DNA from: Anthoceros angustus
Taxonomy: Eukaryota; Plantae; Anthocerotophyta
Direction: 5' to 3'
DNA: 64,000 nucleotides
Assembly: GCA_010909165.1 (NCBI GenBank)
Contig: VJWM01000253.1
Coordinates: forward strand, 124,001-188,000
Translations under genes and position numbers: made by a program
In this document: positions 11,310 to 22,401 of the stretch, piece after piece
Layout of the letters: each line of letters begins with the position of its first letter
Numbering within the stretch: the first letter of the stretch is position 1
Notes under the pieces: model-generated
Told to the model about the DNA's origin: nothing
The model's input: only the letters and a program-made list of their open reading frames with translations
The model's database searches: none

Positions 11310-11582
11310 TGGACAGATTATGGAACATTTTATGGAACGGATTACAATCGCAGTTGTATTCTTGTGCAAAATTCATATGAGGTGGACAGCAGGAGAGGTC
11401 ATGGACAGATTATGGAACATTGATGGAGGGCTTTTATGGAACATTTTATGGAACGGATTACAATCGCAGTTGTATTCTTGTGCAAAATTCATATGAGGTG
11501 GACAGAAGGAGATGAAGACATCTTATGAAGCTCCGATAACGAGGTAACAAGCACAATTGTGTTCTTGTGCAAAATTCATAGT
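11310..11582. repeat. Local duplication between the convergent BRO1 and NAT 3' ends
   Basis: TTATGGAACATTTTATGGAACGGATTACAATCGCAGTTGTATTCTTGTGCAAAATTCATATGAGGTGGACAG occurs twice, plus a third partial copy at about 11560. Confidence 0.85.
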
Positions 11583-11860: not shown

Positions 11861-14800
11861 TTAGGTAGGTGGGAAGAACTTATTAAGCCCAAGTGGCAGT
11901 CTGTAGAACTCGAGGTTGCGAGGATCTCCATTGAAGGTCCTGAACTTCTCCCACCATCCCATTCCACGGTCCTTCGGTGTGGCGTGGTTCATTGTGTTGT
12001 CCAGAATGGCAGTGATGAACAACGCAATCACCGGGCTTGAAGAGAAGATCACGTTGAGCACATCGTTGAACTGCAACAGTTTCAGACACTTTGTCACCTG
12101 CTGCACGATCCAAGGGCCTATAGGAGACGAACCTTAGAGTGCATGGTTACTTCACTTACCCAGTCAGCTCCAGTGTGCACAGGGCCATGAAGAGCTGAAG
12201 TCCTGAACTCGTTGAAGTACTGTGGGACGGAAATGGCCATGAAAAACGCGAAGCCGATGATGAACATGTTCCGGGAAGAGTTCAAATTAACAAACTGAAG
12301 CTGTGAGATTCCGACGGCCGCTGCTCGAGGCATACAAAGAAAACATGATCAGCACCAGGCACGGGAGGTGCAGTTCTGAAAACTGAGATTGAAGAATGTG
12401 GTAGACGAGAAAACTTACTGACAACCCCGAACACGATGCAGAAGATAGCTGCAACAATGGGTTGGGGTATCGAGGCAAAAATTCCACCAAACTTGCCTGC
12501 ATCGACGGAAGAGTACATCACAACAGTCAAATTGGATGCAACTAGAGAAATGCTACCTTTCAGCTCGGACCTTGGGTGCAACGGATGCAGGGAACCAGCT
12601 CACCAAGTAGAGAGAAAGCGATCATGAAGCCTGCAGAGATCTGCACCACTCGGCGACTGCCAACCCTGGTGATACCAATAACTCCCACATTTTCACTGCA
12701 ACAGACAAACAGCACGAATGCGTCAGCCATGACGTCGCGTGCCCAGAGCAATGAAGGCGTGGTATAAAAGGCGTACGGAGAAATGGTGACTCCAGTTGTG
12801 GTTCCAAACATTCCCGCGATGAGCAATCCTATACCCTGCACCATGACACGGTCCACACCTAACCCTTGAGAACGCGTCCACCTCAGGGACCACCACACGC
12901 AATGAAGGAAGCAATGGCGGTGAAAGCATGTGAAACCGACCTGCCAACCAACTCCTCGGCTGATGACGTACGGGGGCGGGGGAGTAGCTCCGGAAAGGCG
13001 TGCAGTGGCGTAGTAATCAGCTGTCGACTGAGCACAGCAAGGGGCGGAGTGTCAGTTCCAACACAGTCCCACAGACTTTCACAGGGACCACATCAGGGAG
13101 GGTGTGGTGTTCCATCCCACCTCGATCAGAGCTGCAAAAGCTCCAGCCATCAAGCCGAAAGCATGGCCGGCGTCGAAGGTCGGGGCACCCCATTGGAGAG
13201 GGTACGGGATGCGGATCCTGAACAGAATACGAGAAATACCACGGGAATTAGGACAGGACAGGACGGGGATGGTGTGCTGGAGAGAGAAGAGACGCATGGC
13301 AACCCACCACGGAGACGCTTCGATGATGTTGGAGCGATCGGTTCGGCAATGTTGTTGTCCCTTGGGGCTCGCCTTGTCGTATGCTCCACTGATTGTGAGC
13401 AGATGGGCATAAGCCCACACCACAGCGATGCCCAAGATGATTGGAAAGAGCTCGAAGATGGGAACCTTCCGGACCTTCACGTGCCTCAGAAACTGAGGAA
13501 TTCCAGATCCTGAAGTTAGAAACAGTGGCTGCAAGTGTATTGAGATGGGTTTACGACTAGTGTTGTGAGCAATACTAACCTGAGAGAAGGCAAGGATCAC
13601 GATGATCTGGGGAAGGCCAACCTCGATACACTTGCCAACCTGGAAGCCGAAGGCCATCAGGGTAAGACACAAGTACACAAGCATGGGGAATTGGGGAATT
13701 AAGTATCGAGACCCCGCTTACCCCAGGAAAACCTTGATTGAACAGACCGAGCCCAACCATTGCAATGGTGGGAGCGATCATGAGGGGTGTGAAAAACCTG
13801 ATGGCACATAGCAAACAGGCACAACACGTGAGAAAGGGGGACGCTCTGGCTTTCAGTCACCGTAGCCTCTTGGAAATGCTAGCGTGGCCCAAAACTTCCC
13901 CCCCTCAAAATACCCCCTTCCTTATTGTAGAAAATATAACAGTGAAGATCAATCCCTTGTCTCACCTTGCCACTATACCCCACAGGCCACTGAATCCCAG
14001 AATAATGTGAAGACTGGACGTTGCGATGTAAGCTCCTTGGACAGCACGAATTGACCTCAAGAACCTCTGTTTACATGAAGCCAAATCACGTGTTTACATG
14101 ACAAGCAAGCATACCTGATCAGTATGCCCAAGAGGCCACTGAATCCAAGGATAATATGAAGGCTGCATCCTGCCAAAGTAGCTCCTTGTATGGCACGCAT
14201 GGTTCTAATAAACCTCTGTTCCAGGGTATGCAGATTATGTGGACGCGAAGGGGCAGCAGACTAGGAGCGGGGATTAGATTGGCAGCATCTACAAACAACC
14301 GGCTCCAGTCAAACGAGCACAGAGAGAGAAAATGAATACCTCATGGTCGTCGTTGATGTGCAGCAAGGCAGGAGAGCGGATGATCGTGATGGTAGGTAGA
14401 ATGAAGTAAAAGGAGCTCCCCACAACCGTCGGAAGGCGGGCCCCAAGAGTAGTCTGAAGCAGAGTGTTAATCCCCGTCACAAACACAACGGACTGAATGA
14501 CCTTGGCCTTGTCGTGCTGCGCAATAACGACAGACCCACATGAGGCAAAGCAGCAAGAGCGACCAGGTCGCCTTCGGACGCAGTGCGAGCAATGGTGCAA
14601 GAAGGCCTACGTCGTCTCCGCCCATCAACGGCACCAGCATCGAGGGGATCATGACGGCAGCACCCAGCATCACGATGTAGTGTTGAAATCCCAGCACAAT
14701 GGCCTCCACTGCACGAAACAGGCAGCGGTGAGGCGACGCAACCCAGAGCCAGAGCCAGTGCCAGCCATTTCAGCTACTTCATTACCCTTCCCCTTCCCCC

Positions 14801-15271
14801 TCCCATCCCTCAAACCGCGAGTCGGCCGAATGTTGGTCAAACTGCAGTTGCCGGGGAGCTAAAAGGTGCAACTGTCGGTTACAACCATCGAGCTGGTGCC
14901 ATTGCGGTTACGAGTTGCTCGCACCCTTGGCACAAAGACGAAAGGGCGCCCACCACGAAGCCCAACCAGCCAAGGAACACCAAAAAACCACACCTTCCTC
15001 CACGCATTCGGTCCACACACAACCCAAGAGCAAGCCAACCAAGAACCCCTCCGTACACCAACGCTCACACCCACACCCACACCCAATTCCCCGCCCACAA
15101 GCAGCCCAATTACGAAAAAGACCCCGCTCCAGCAGGGGAAGCAGGCGCAGGGCAGGAAGCGGAGAACGTACCCCAAGGCGGATTGTCATTGATGCAGTAC
15201 TTGAGCGTGAGCAGCTGCTCCTCCGCCTTGTGCTGCAAATCCTCCGGCTTGGCAGGAGCGGGGGCCGCCAT
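11861..15271 (-). CDS. Nucleobase-ascorbate transporter (NAT/NCS2, xanthine-uracil permease family), multi-exon, with a duplicated alternative exon
   Basis: Exon 1 MAAPAPAKPEDLQHKAEEQLLTLKYCINDNPPW (15271-15172). TM1 motif EAIVLGFQHYIVML, RLPTVVGSSF, NAT signature ENVGVIGITRVGSRRVVQISAGF, C-terminus FYRLPLGLNKFFPPT*. Confidence 0.95.
13966..14066 (-). other. NAT alternative exon B (101 nt)
   Basis: AG/GT flanked; encodes RFLRSIRAVQGAYIATSSLHIILGFSGLWGIVA(R); same phases as exon A. Confidence 0.85.
14115..14215 (-). other. NAT alternative exon A (101 nt)
   Basis: AG/GT flanked; encodes RFIRTMRAIQGATLAGCSLHIILGFSGLLGILI(R); phase 0 in, phase 2 out. Confidence 0.85.
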
Positions 15272-15571
15272 GTCGCCCCAGCACTGTCCTCCGCTCTACA
15301 ACAATCCCTGCCCTCTGCTTCCCCCTCCCGCAAGACCAGTCAGCCCTCTTCCACCAAGACCCGCCCTGCGCCAATTCCGCCGCCCTCAACACCACCACCC
15401 GAGGGAGCTCCGGCGCATTCCAATTGCAATGCCGAACCCGAAGCCCAGCAAGCCCAAGGCAGCGGCAGCAGCAGCAGCAGCAACACCGGCACCCGAAGCT
15501 GCTCCGAAGCTTCCCGCTTCCCCGCCCAGCTCAACCACTGAAAGAAGCGCCCACGAAAGCCCAGCAAAGGC

Positions 15572-15631
15572 GCAGTGCAGTGCAGTGCAGTGCAGTGCAG
15601 TGCAGTGCAGTGCAATGCAATGCAATGCAAT
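15572..15631. repeat. Compound pentanucleotide microsatellite (GCAGT)8(GCAAT)4 upstream of the NAT start codon
   Basis: Read directly from the sequence. Confidence 0.97.
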
Positions 15632-20124: not shown

Positions 20125-22401
20125 ATGCGCAGCTGGCGGGTTTGGATGTGGAGACGGGTCGTGCTGCTGCCCCTGCACACGTGCCGGGCGATTGCGAACC
20201 TTGCAGGCCTGCAGGATACGAAAGCGGCATGCCTCGCTGAAACTGTGAGCCAACTATGTCAGCAGGGGCAGCTCACTGAGGCCGTTGAGGCTCTGGGAGT
20301 TCTGGTGCAGACAGATTGTTGCATCTCCAAACCTCTCTTTTTAACGGTTCTAAAGGAATGTGTGGCTAAGAAGAATCTGGCTCTGGGTCGCCGTGTTCAT
20401 GCTCTCACCTTGAAGCAGGGGCATGAGTCGGACACGATCCTGTGCAACCACATCTTGCGAATGTATGCCTCTCATGCCAGGCTAGAAGAGGCTACGGACG
20501 TGTTTACTATGGTTGCCAGACCAGATGCCTTCACGTGGTCTGCCATACTCTCAGCGCACGTCAAACACGGGCGGGATAAGCAGGCCATACAACTGTATCA
20601 TCGCATGCGCAGGTCAAAAGTGGAGCCAGATGCTCATGTGTTTGTGGCAGCCCTTCAGGCTTGTGCAAGGGGAGCAGACTTGGCATCTGGGCAGCAGGTG
20701 CATGCTCATGTGTTGGCTAAAGGACTCGAGCCTAATTTGTTTGTTAGTAGTGGCTTGGTTGTTATGTATGCGAAGTGTGGCAGCTTAGAAGACGCTCAAA
20801 GAGTGTTTGATGGACTTGGGCAAAAGGATGTGGTCACGTGGAATGCCCTGATAGCAGGGTATTCCCAGCGGGGAATGGGGCAAGAAGCCTTTTGTCTATA
20901 TGATGCTATGGTAGAAGAAGGGATCGTTGTACCCGATTCTGTGACATATTTGTCCCTCCTGCAGGCATGTGCAAGTATGGGCACGCAGGCCTTGGAGAAG
21001 GGGAAGCATCTTCATGCACGAATTCGTGAAAGGGGGCATCATGCTGATGTGTTTGTGGCCAACAGTTTGGTTAACATGTATGCAAAGTGTGGGAGCTTGA
21101 ACGACGCCCAAAGAGTGTTTGACAGACTTGGTCAAAAAGATATTGTGACATGGAATTCGCTGATCGCAGGGTATGTCCAGCAGGGCCTGGGAGAGGAAGG
21201 CCTTCGTCTCTACGATGCTATGCAAGAAGATGACACTCCTGTACCAACTTCTGTGACGTTTTTGTGCCTCCTGCAGGCTTGTGCAAGCGTGGGCAACCCG
21301 GCTTTGGACAAAGGGAAGGAGCTTCATGCACGAATTACAGAGAAAGGCCTTCAAGGAGATGTGTTTACAGCCAGCTGCTTGGTAAACATGTACGCAAAGT
21401 GTGGCAGCTTGGAAGACGCTCAAAGAGTGTTTGACGGACTTGGTCAAAAAGATGTGGTGGCATGGAGTGCCATGATAGCAGGATATTGCCAGCAAGGCAT
21501 GGTGCAGGAAGTCCTTCGCCTTTACAATGAAATGCAAGAAGAAGGTCTGACAACACCCGACGCAGTGACGTTTGTGTACCTCCTACAGGCATGTGCAAGT
21601 GTGGGAGCTTTGCATGTGGGAAGGCAGCTTCATGCACAGATAAACAAGCAAGGCCTTCAAGCTGATTTGGTTGTGGGTGGGAGTTTGATAAACATGTATG
21701 GAAAGACTGGCAGCATGGTTGATGCACAGCAGGTGTTTGAAGCATTGCCTGAAAGAGACACTGCTGCTTGGAATGCTATCATTGCAGGCTACACCTGTCA
21801 AGGGAACAGTGACACCGTCTTTAACTTGTTTCGGAGGATGAGGAAGGATGGCATACAGCCAGATGGCATCACATTCCTTAGTATATTAACAGCATGCAGT
21901 CATTCGGGTCTTCCAGAAAAGGGGCGAGAGTACTTTGAAGCTATGAGTAGGGAATACGGGATCAGTCCCACGGTGGAGCACTATACTTGCATTGTGGACC
22001 TCCTCGGTCGTGTGGGCCGGTTGGACGAGTCACTAGCTTTAGTGAAGACGATGCCTGTGCATCCTGATGCTGCAGCTTGGCACACTGTATTAGGGGCTTG
22101 TCAAAAGTGGAGCAATGTGGAGGTGGGATGCCACGCTTTCAATGAAGCAGTGAAGTTAGAAAATAAGGATGCTGCAGCATATGTTCTTATGTCGAACATA
22201 TATACTGAGGCCCGGATGTGGGATCAGGCAGATGAGATGCAGTCGAGGAGAATACGAATCAGCGCGTGGAAGCTGCCAGGACAGAGCCTGTGGACGGACA
22301 TGGATGGTTTGGTCCACAGTTTCTGGGTTGGAGATAGGAATGCCCCAGATAAGCTCCAGATCAGGAGAGAATTAACAGAGACTTGCAGGAAAACTCCATA
22401 G
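20125..22401 (+). CDS. PLS-class pentatricopeptide repeat protein with E1/E2/E+ extension (organellar RNA-editing factor type), intronless, 758 aa
   Basis: About 17 PLS motifs (YAKCGSLEDA, DVVTWNALIAGY, PDSVTYLSLLQACAS), P2-L2-S2 (FLSILTACSHSG, EHYTCIVDLLGR), E1/E2 and a PG-box-like KLPGQSLW...VHSFWVGD. The ORF stops before any DYW domain. Arg/Trp-rich N-terminus resembles a transit peptide. Confidence 0.95.
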   Translation: MRSWRVWMWRRVVLLPLHTCRAIANLAGLQDTKAACLAETVSQLCQQGQLTEAVEALGVLVQTDCCISKPLFLTVLKECVAKKNLALGRRVHALTLKQGHESDTILCNHILRMYASHARLEEATDVFTMVARPDAFTWSAILSAHVKHGRDKQAIQLYHRMRRSKVEPDAHVFVAALQACARGADLASGQQVHAHVLAKGLEPNLFVSSGLVVMYAKCGSLEDAQRVFDGLGQKDVVTWNALIAGYSQRGMGQEAFCLYDAMVEEGIVVPDSVTYLSLLQACASMGTQALEKGKHLHARIRERGHHADVFVANSLVNMYAKCGSLNDAQRVFDRLGQKDIVTWNSLIAGYVQQGLGEEGLRLYDAMQEDDTPVPTSVTFLCLLQACASVGNPALDKGKELHARITEKGLQGDVFTASCLVNMYAKCGSLEDAQRVFDGLGQKDVVAWSAMIAGYCQQGMVQEVLRLYNEMQEEGLTTPDAVTFVYLLQACASVGALHVGRQLHAQINKQGLQADLVVGGSLINMYGKTGSMVDAQQVFEALPERDTAAWNAIIAGYTCQGNSDTVFNLFRRMRKDGIQPDGITFLSILTACSHSGLPEKGREYFEAMSREYGISPTVEHYTCIVDLLGRVGRLDESLALVKTMPVHPDAAAWHTVLGACQKWSNVEVGCHAFNEAVKLENKDAAAYVLMSNIYTEARMWDQADEMQSRRIRISAWKLPGQSLWTDMDGLVHSFWVGDRNAPDKLQIRRELTETCRKTP

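Follow-up and report, generated by a model that had tools for sequence, protein, structure and literature searches.

A nucleobase-ascorbate transporter (NAT/NCS2) gene of a hornwort very probably contains a pair of mutually exclusive exons, derived by tandem duplication of the exon for the fourth transmembrane helix (TM4), one or the other of which enters each mRNA to yield two isoforms of 526 aa. The gene lies on the minus strand of the window, that is, of the whole 64,000-nucleotide stretch of DNA analysed here. In the model that we propose, an old tandem duplication of a 101-nt TM4 exon in the NAT/NCS2 gene would have given rise to the pair, and the mature mRNA would carry either exon A or exon B, the two isoforms differing at 11 of 34 residues. 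Two layers would keep the choice exclusive: (i) the 48-nt spacer between the exons would be too short for removal as an intron and, once exon A had been chosen, the only acceptor left for its donor would be that of the downstream exon; and (ii) transcripts carrying both exons or neither would be out of frame and would be expected to undergo nonsense-mediated decay.

The transporter gene

The gene model was obtained by splicing under the guidance of a liverwort homologue (P0084), from an ATG at 15271 to a stop at 11861. In this guided model all introns are GT-AG, and the 13 introns, excluding the spacer between the two alternative exons, are 81-463 nt long. Four of the junctions are confirmed by an assembled RNA contig (X1, described below). 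The features of the gene that bear on the exon pair are the following.

15271-11861, minus strand: NAT/NCS2 (nucleobase-ascorbate transporter) coding sequence, 14 coding exons per transcript, 526 aa.
14340-14516, minus strand: upstream constitutive exon, TM2-TM3 region and start of an extracellular loop, from Pfam, the alignment to SVCT1 and RNA contigs X1 and X5.
14216-14339, minus strand: intron between the upstream exon and exon A, 124 nt, GT..AG ends.
14115-14215, minus strand: exon A, the derived alternative copy (RFIRTM...GLLGILIR), 101 nt, spliced in X5.
14067-14114, minus strand: 48-nt spacer, running from the donor of A to the acceptor of B.
13966-14066, minus strand: exon B, the canonical-like alternative copy (RFLRSI...GLWGIVAR), 101 nt, present in X1 and X5.
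13798-13965, minus strand: intron between exon B and the downstream exon, 168 nt, removed at the joint 13795/13964 in X1 and X5.
13722-13797, minus strand: downstream constitutive exon (TM4-TM5 linker and TM5), joined to A or to B in the RNA contigs.

Members of the NAT family are marked by the sequence [QEP]-N-x-G-x-x-x-x-T-[RKG] in TM10 and by a QH motif in TM1. The translation contains both, as GFQHY (QH motif, TM1) and ENVGVIGITR (ENxGxxxxTR signature, TM10), and in this the hornwort gene resembles the plant NATs (NAT1/NAT2-like clade; structural relatives UraA, UapA and SVCT1). Even taken alone, the upstream exon scores 28.4 bits against PF00860 (Xan_ur_permease), above the cut-off of 27, which places it in the family. 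Bryophyte NATs are the closest orthologues of the predicted protein, at 65-69% identity, among them a Sphagnum NAT (P0160, PF00860; 69% over 519 aa) and Marchantia Mp_6g08300 (66%); the Sphagnum orthologue also has identical boundaries for its 101-nt TM4 exon. The moss and liverwort homologues carry PF00860, and the angiosperm proteins matched in those searches bear the name nucleobase-ascorbate transporter 2. No record of the predicted 526-aa protein itself was found in the protein collections searched.

Repeats flank the coding sequence. A perfect (GCAGT)n microsatellite of 11.6 copies (15572-15629, plus strand) is situated some 300 nt before the start codon, where it probably falls within the 5' UTR or the promoter of the gene, and a (GCA)8 run is found near it at 15459-15482. 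On the 3' side, at 11330-11520 (minus strand), a segment of about 90 nt containing cacctcatatgaattttgcacaagaatacaactgcgattgtaatccgttccataaaatgttccataa was seen by eye to be directly repeated past the stop codon; Tandem Repeats Finder reported just a 12-nt unit in this interval.

Anatomy of the exon pair

The two alternative exons are homologous. Both have AG immediately before them and GT immediately after, their phase is the same, and they are identical at 71 of 101 nt (30 differences) and at 23 of 34 encoded residues. When their peptides were searched against the 64-kb window with tblastn, each matched the other exon (E = 5.7e-12) and no further site, which indicates a real duplication and no chance likeness. 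The original prediction had described two homologous 101-nt exons with AG/GT ends and matching phase across a 48-nt gap, and its coordinates, peptides and 11 amino-acid differences were all reproduced. Tandem Repeats Finder did not detect the 149-nt duplication, as the copies are too diverged.

The reading frame permits one exon at a time. With A alone or B alone, the upstream exon continues in frame into the downstream exon, as had been predicted, and the anticipated frameshifts for the other two combinations were also found: inclusion of both exons leads to a stop three codons into B (codon 161), and omission of both shifts the frame and leads to a stop at codon 267.

A 10-mer, CATGTAAACA, occurs twice within the 48-nt spacer (14071-14100, minus strand): one copy lies directly behind the donor of A, and the other ends at the acceptor of B. 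The repeat may be left over from the duplication junction, or it may be a splicing signal that the two exons share.

Transcript evidence for either-or use

The RNA evidence consists of contigs assembled from four runs; such contigs lose rare variants, and their depths are a poor measure of expression. Two of them span the pair: X1, from a run on the window's own sample, is 100% identical to the window, and X5, from a run on a relative, is 95-99% alike. X1 is a 2,296-nt contig (depth 60.8) with the joints 14340>14066 and 13966>13797. It therefore carries exon B only, the first intron, exon A and the spacer having been removed together as a single 273-nt skip. X5 comprises two contigs of 154 nt that have in common 25 nt of the downstream exon and a 23-nt upstream end. 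One of the two (depth 34.3) contains exon A joined directly to the downstream exon, with B skipped (joint 13795/14113, corresponding to the splice 14115>13797), while the other (depth 46.3) contains exon B with the joint 13795/13964 (13966>13797). The 23-nt upstream end of X5 is a loose end with four differences from the window and was assigned to the upstream exon by similarity; together with two adjoining bases it matches the 3' end of that exon at 21 of 25 positions, in frame. Equal-length contigs with both flanks in common are the output to be expected from an assembler when two isoforms differ by one swapped exon.

No joint of A to B and no joint skipping both exons was seen in the assembled contigs of the four runs, from which rare forms drop out. 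The predicted mutually exclusive splicing is thus supported by the junctions 14340>14066 (X1), 13966>13797 (X1 and X5) and 14115>13797 (X5). The junctions specific to B were recovered from the window's own sample, which assembled isoform B only, and one of them from the relative as well; the one specific to A came from the relative's run alone (X5). All were seen on contigs.

The relative's two RNA forms might also represent two paralogous genes with identical flanking exons, since near-identical gene copies likewise give contigs that share their ends in a de Bruijn graph. This explanation appears highly improbable, because two further contigs from relatives carry A and B adjoining, as the window does: X23, which is unspliced and of low depth, and X24, a genomic contig that is 90-95% alike. 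Moreover, the joints in X5 fall exactly at the splice sites predicted from the tandem arrangement, the exon A of X5 is identical to that of the window, and a second gene would need to have lost precisely the complementary exon.

How exclusivity may be enforced

The 48-nt spacer is probably too short to be spliced. It is only just over half as long as the gene's shortest other intron (81 nt), and plant introns need about 60-70 nt for splicing. Its best branch-point-like site, UGAU, located by eye, is 19 nt before the acceptor of B and only some 28 nt away from the donor of A. Other devices for enforcing a choice between neighbouring exons were considered. The donors of A and B are not of the U12 type, and competing RNA structure was not apparent, as the predicted folding of the 542-nt region was no more stable than that of shuffled sequence (z = +1.58). 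Given the short spacer, the non-U12 donors and the lack of unusual structure, we infer that a steric block backed up by decay is the most economical mechanism.

Decay could also act alone: the spacer would be spliced, transcripts containing both A and B would be made, and nonsense-mediated decay would then remove them. Such transcripts would be typical decay targets, with a stop three codons into B and far upstream of the later junctions, and, being rare and unstable, would be missing from contigs; the splice sites on both sides of the spacer also look normal. We nevertheless hold this version to be rather unlikely, in view of a spacer of 48 nt where the shortest other intron has 81 nt and plants require some 60-70 nt, the cramped position of the branch-point-like site relative to the donor of A, and the A-B joint being found in the contigs of none of the four runs.

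Selection on the two copies

Comparison of exon A with exon B gives a dN/dS of 0.25 with a dS of about 0.99, and on this estimate, which had been suggested as a check of the original prediction, both exons are under purifying selection. Within the central 11 codons (SLHIILGFSGL), the two exons have five synonymous and no non-synonymous differences, so that the identity of the encoded residues has been kept by selection and not by recent gene conversion.

Exon A is better conserved than exon B between the window and the relative represented by X5: exon A has no differences over 105 nt, exon B has 3 over 105 and the upstream exon has 12 over 176. Between X23 and the window, the interval 14103-14300 contains 14 substitutions and three indels; among the differences listed, four substitutions all lie in intron, and most of the other substitutions are probably intronic too. 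The last codons of the upstream exon (14340-14365), which encode the extracellular loop before TM4, read LHINDDHE in the window and LDIHDDHE in X5. To judge from these comparisons, the loop before TM4 evolves fast and the adjoining exon A does not.

These comparisons bear on the possibility that only the relative uses exon A and that the window's own species retains it as a silent leftover, in which case a single isoform would be made here. The sole RNA contig from the species' own sample (X1) does carry exon B alone, although a single assembled run cannot prove absence. The window's exon A is open, has its AG and GT intact and is identical over 105 nt to the relative's spliced exon, even though the neighbouring exons of the two plants differ by 2-7%; and with a dS between A and B of about 1, an unused copy should have decayed. 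Silence of exon A is improbable on these grounds, and use of both exons is the reading that we retain.

The exchanged protein segment

The swap was located by alignment to mouse SVCT1, in which the upstream exon matches residues 88-129 and exon B matches residues 160-185, which correspond to TM4. The match of exon B is weak by itself and was accepted because it is collinear with the stronger match of the upstream exon; exon A alone, when compared with solved structures, gave chance matches only. The collinear alignment supports the prediction of a swap at about TM4; the putative swapped segment takes in the last part of the extracellular loop, TM4 and the first part of the TM4-TM5 linker. NAT/NCS2 proteins have a 7+7 inverted-repeat fold with core and gate domains, which, to judge by the alignment to SVCT1, the hornwort protein would share. 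The core, or transport, domain of this fold is built from TM1-4 and TM8-11, has the substrate site between TM3 and TM10, and moves against the gate domain (PMC10011568) in an elevator cycle (PMC10011568, PMC11992111). In AZG2, which is related, TM4 is displaced by some two helical turns, and the transport domain is joined to the scaffold domain through the TM4-TM5 linker (PMC11992111).

Among 144 plant NATs, three positions of the segment are nearly or wholly invariant: I14 (99%), S17 (99%) and W29 (100%), the last being a Trp at the cytoplasmic end of TM4. Exon B retains all three, whereas exon A has L, C and L in their place, which marks B as canonical-like and A as derived. Relative to the same 144 proteins, exon B has unusual residues of its own at I6, Y13 and T16. 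As TM4 belongs to the moving core domain and exon A replaces near-invariant residues within it, the transport kinetics, stability or specificity of isoform A are probably altered. A more far-reaching proposal, to which we give only tentative credence, is that isoform A has been long maintained and neofunctionalised, with a regulated share relative to B, and that this lineage regularly diversifies its membrane transporters through steric-block splicing. The ratio of A to B in contig depth was 0:61 for one run and 34:46 for a second, depth being no expression level.

Age and distribution of the duplication

The orthologous TM4 exon was examined in two Sphagnum species, Marchantia, Physcomitrium, Calypogeia, Selaginella and Diphasiastrum. 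It is single, 101 nt long and bounded by the same AG and GT in 7 of 7 loci (six species). An apparent second copy in Selaginella was a weak match that fell within the coding exon before it and was read in a different frame; it was rejected as a chance likeness. Of the orthologs, in which the original prediction had proposed to look for the same duplication, those of relatives have the exons in tandem (X23 and X24), and the seven moss, liverwort and lycophyte loci do not. Searches for relatives in metagenomes gave no match, either with a DNA pattern common to both exons or with the peptide of the upstream exon.

Aligned over 102 nt, A and B are identical at 72 positions, and either of them is identical to the moss, liverwort and lycophyte exons at 63-73 of 102. 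The distance between A and B thus equals the distance to those exons, which indicates that the duplication is old; a tree built from the 102-nt exon sequences lacks resolution and gives no date for it. Going by the distribution of the exons, the pair is one of this lineage; the duplication would either have arisen on the plant's own deep lineage or have been lost elsewhere.

Comparison with known systems

In animals, mutually exclusive exons that are homologous to each other are a classic device. One such pair, exons 2 and 3 of alpha-tropomyosin, is enforced by a short spacer; frame incompatibility is a further known means of enforcement, and exons 3A and 3B of SLC25A3 provide an example in a transporter. 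The NAT pair resembles both of these in consisting of adjoining homologous exons of equal length and phase with an intervening intron that is probably too short for a spliceosome to assemble on, and in losing frame when both exons or neither are used. As in SLC25A3, one transmembrane segment of a carrier is replaced. The NAT pair differs from these systems in its land-plant host and in that the steric block is here inferred. Its mechanism is a textbook one; the host lineage and the gene family are new.

To our knowledge, very few examples of mutually exclusive exons in plants are backed by transcripts. The Kassiopeia study (2014) listed pairs in Arabidopsis that were no more than predictions and noted no described case (PMC3923563). 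In a conifer, Picea abies, the MADS-box gene DAL19 has mutually exclusive exon isoforms (PMC6243048). DAL19 and the NAT gene have in common transcript-backed either-or use of exons in a plant gene; they differ in that the latter encodes a membrane transporter, exchanges a transmembrane helix, has a 48-nt spacer and belongs to a host of bryophyte grade. Within the plant NATs, the hornwort gene stands apart in having two TM4 exons where the seven other land-plant loci have one, and its isoform A lacks a Trp that is present in 144 of the 144 homologues compared. A literature search found no paper linking mutually exclusive exons with NAT transporters, and among papers containing both 'mutually exclusive exons' and SLC23, none appears, to judge by titles and abstracts, to concern such a pair in the family.

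With its RNA support, short spacer, helix swap and purifying selection, the pair offers a clean model for the question whether either-or splicing by steric block is used in plants. The two natural isoforms also amount to a ready-made experiment on TM4 and on the TM4-TM5 hinge of the elevator-type NAT/SLC23 fold, one that includes a natural replacement of the Trp that is invariant in the plant homologues.

Elsewhere in the window, a 758-aa pentatricopeptide repeat protein, for which the public protein collection held no identical record, is encoded by an intronless ORF on the plus strand at 20125-22401; it is of the PLS class and has an E motif (Pfam PPR families, PF20431).
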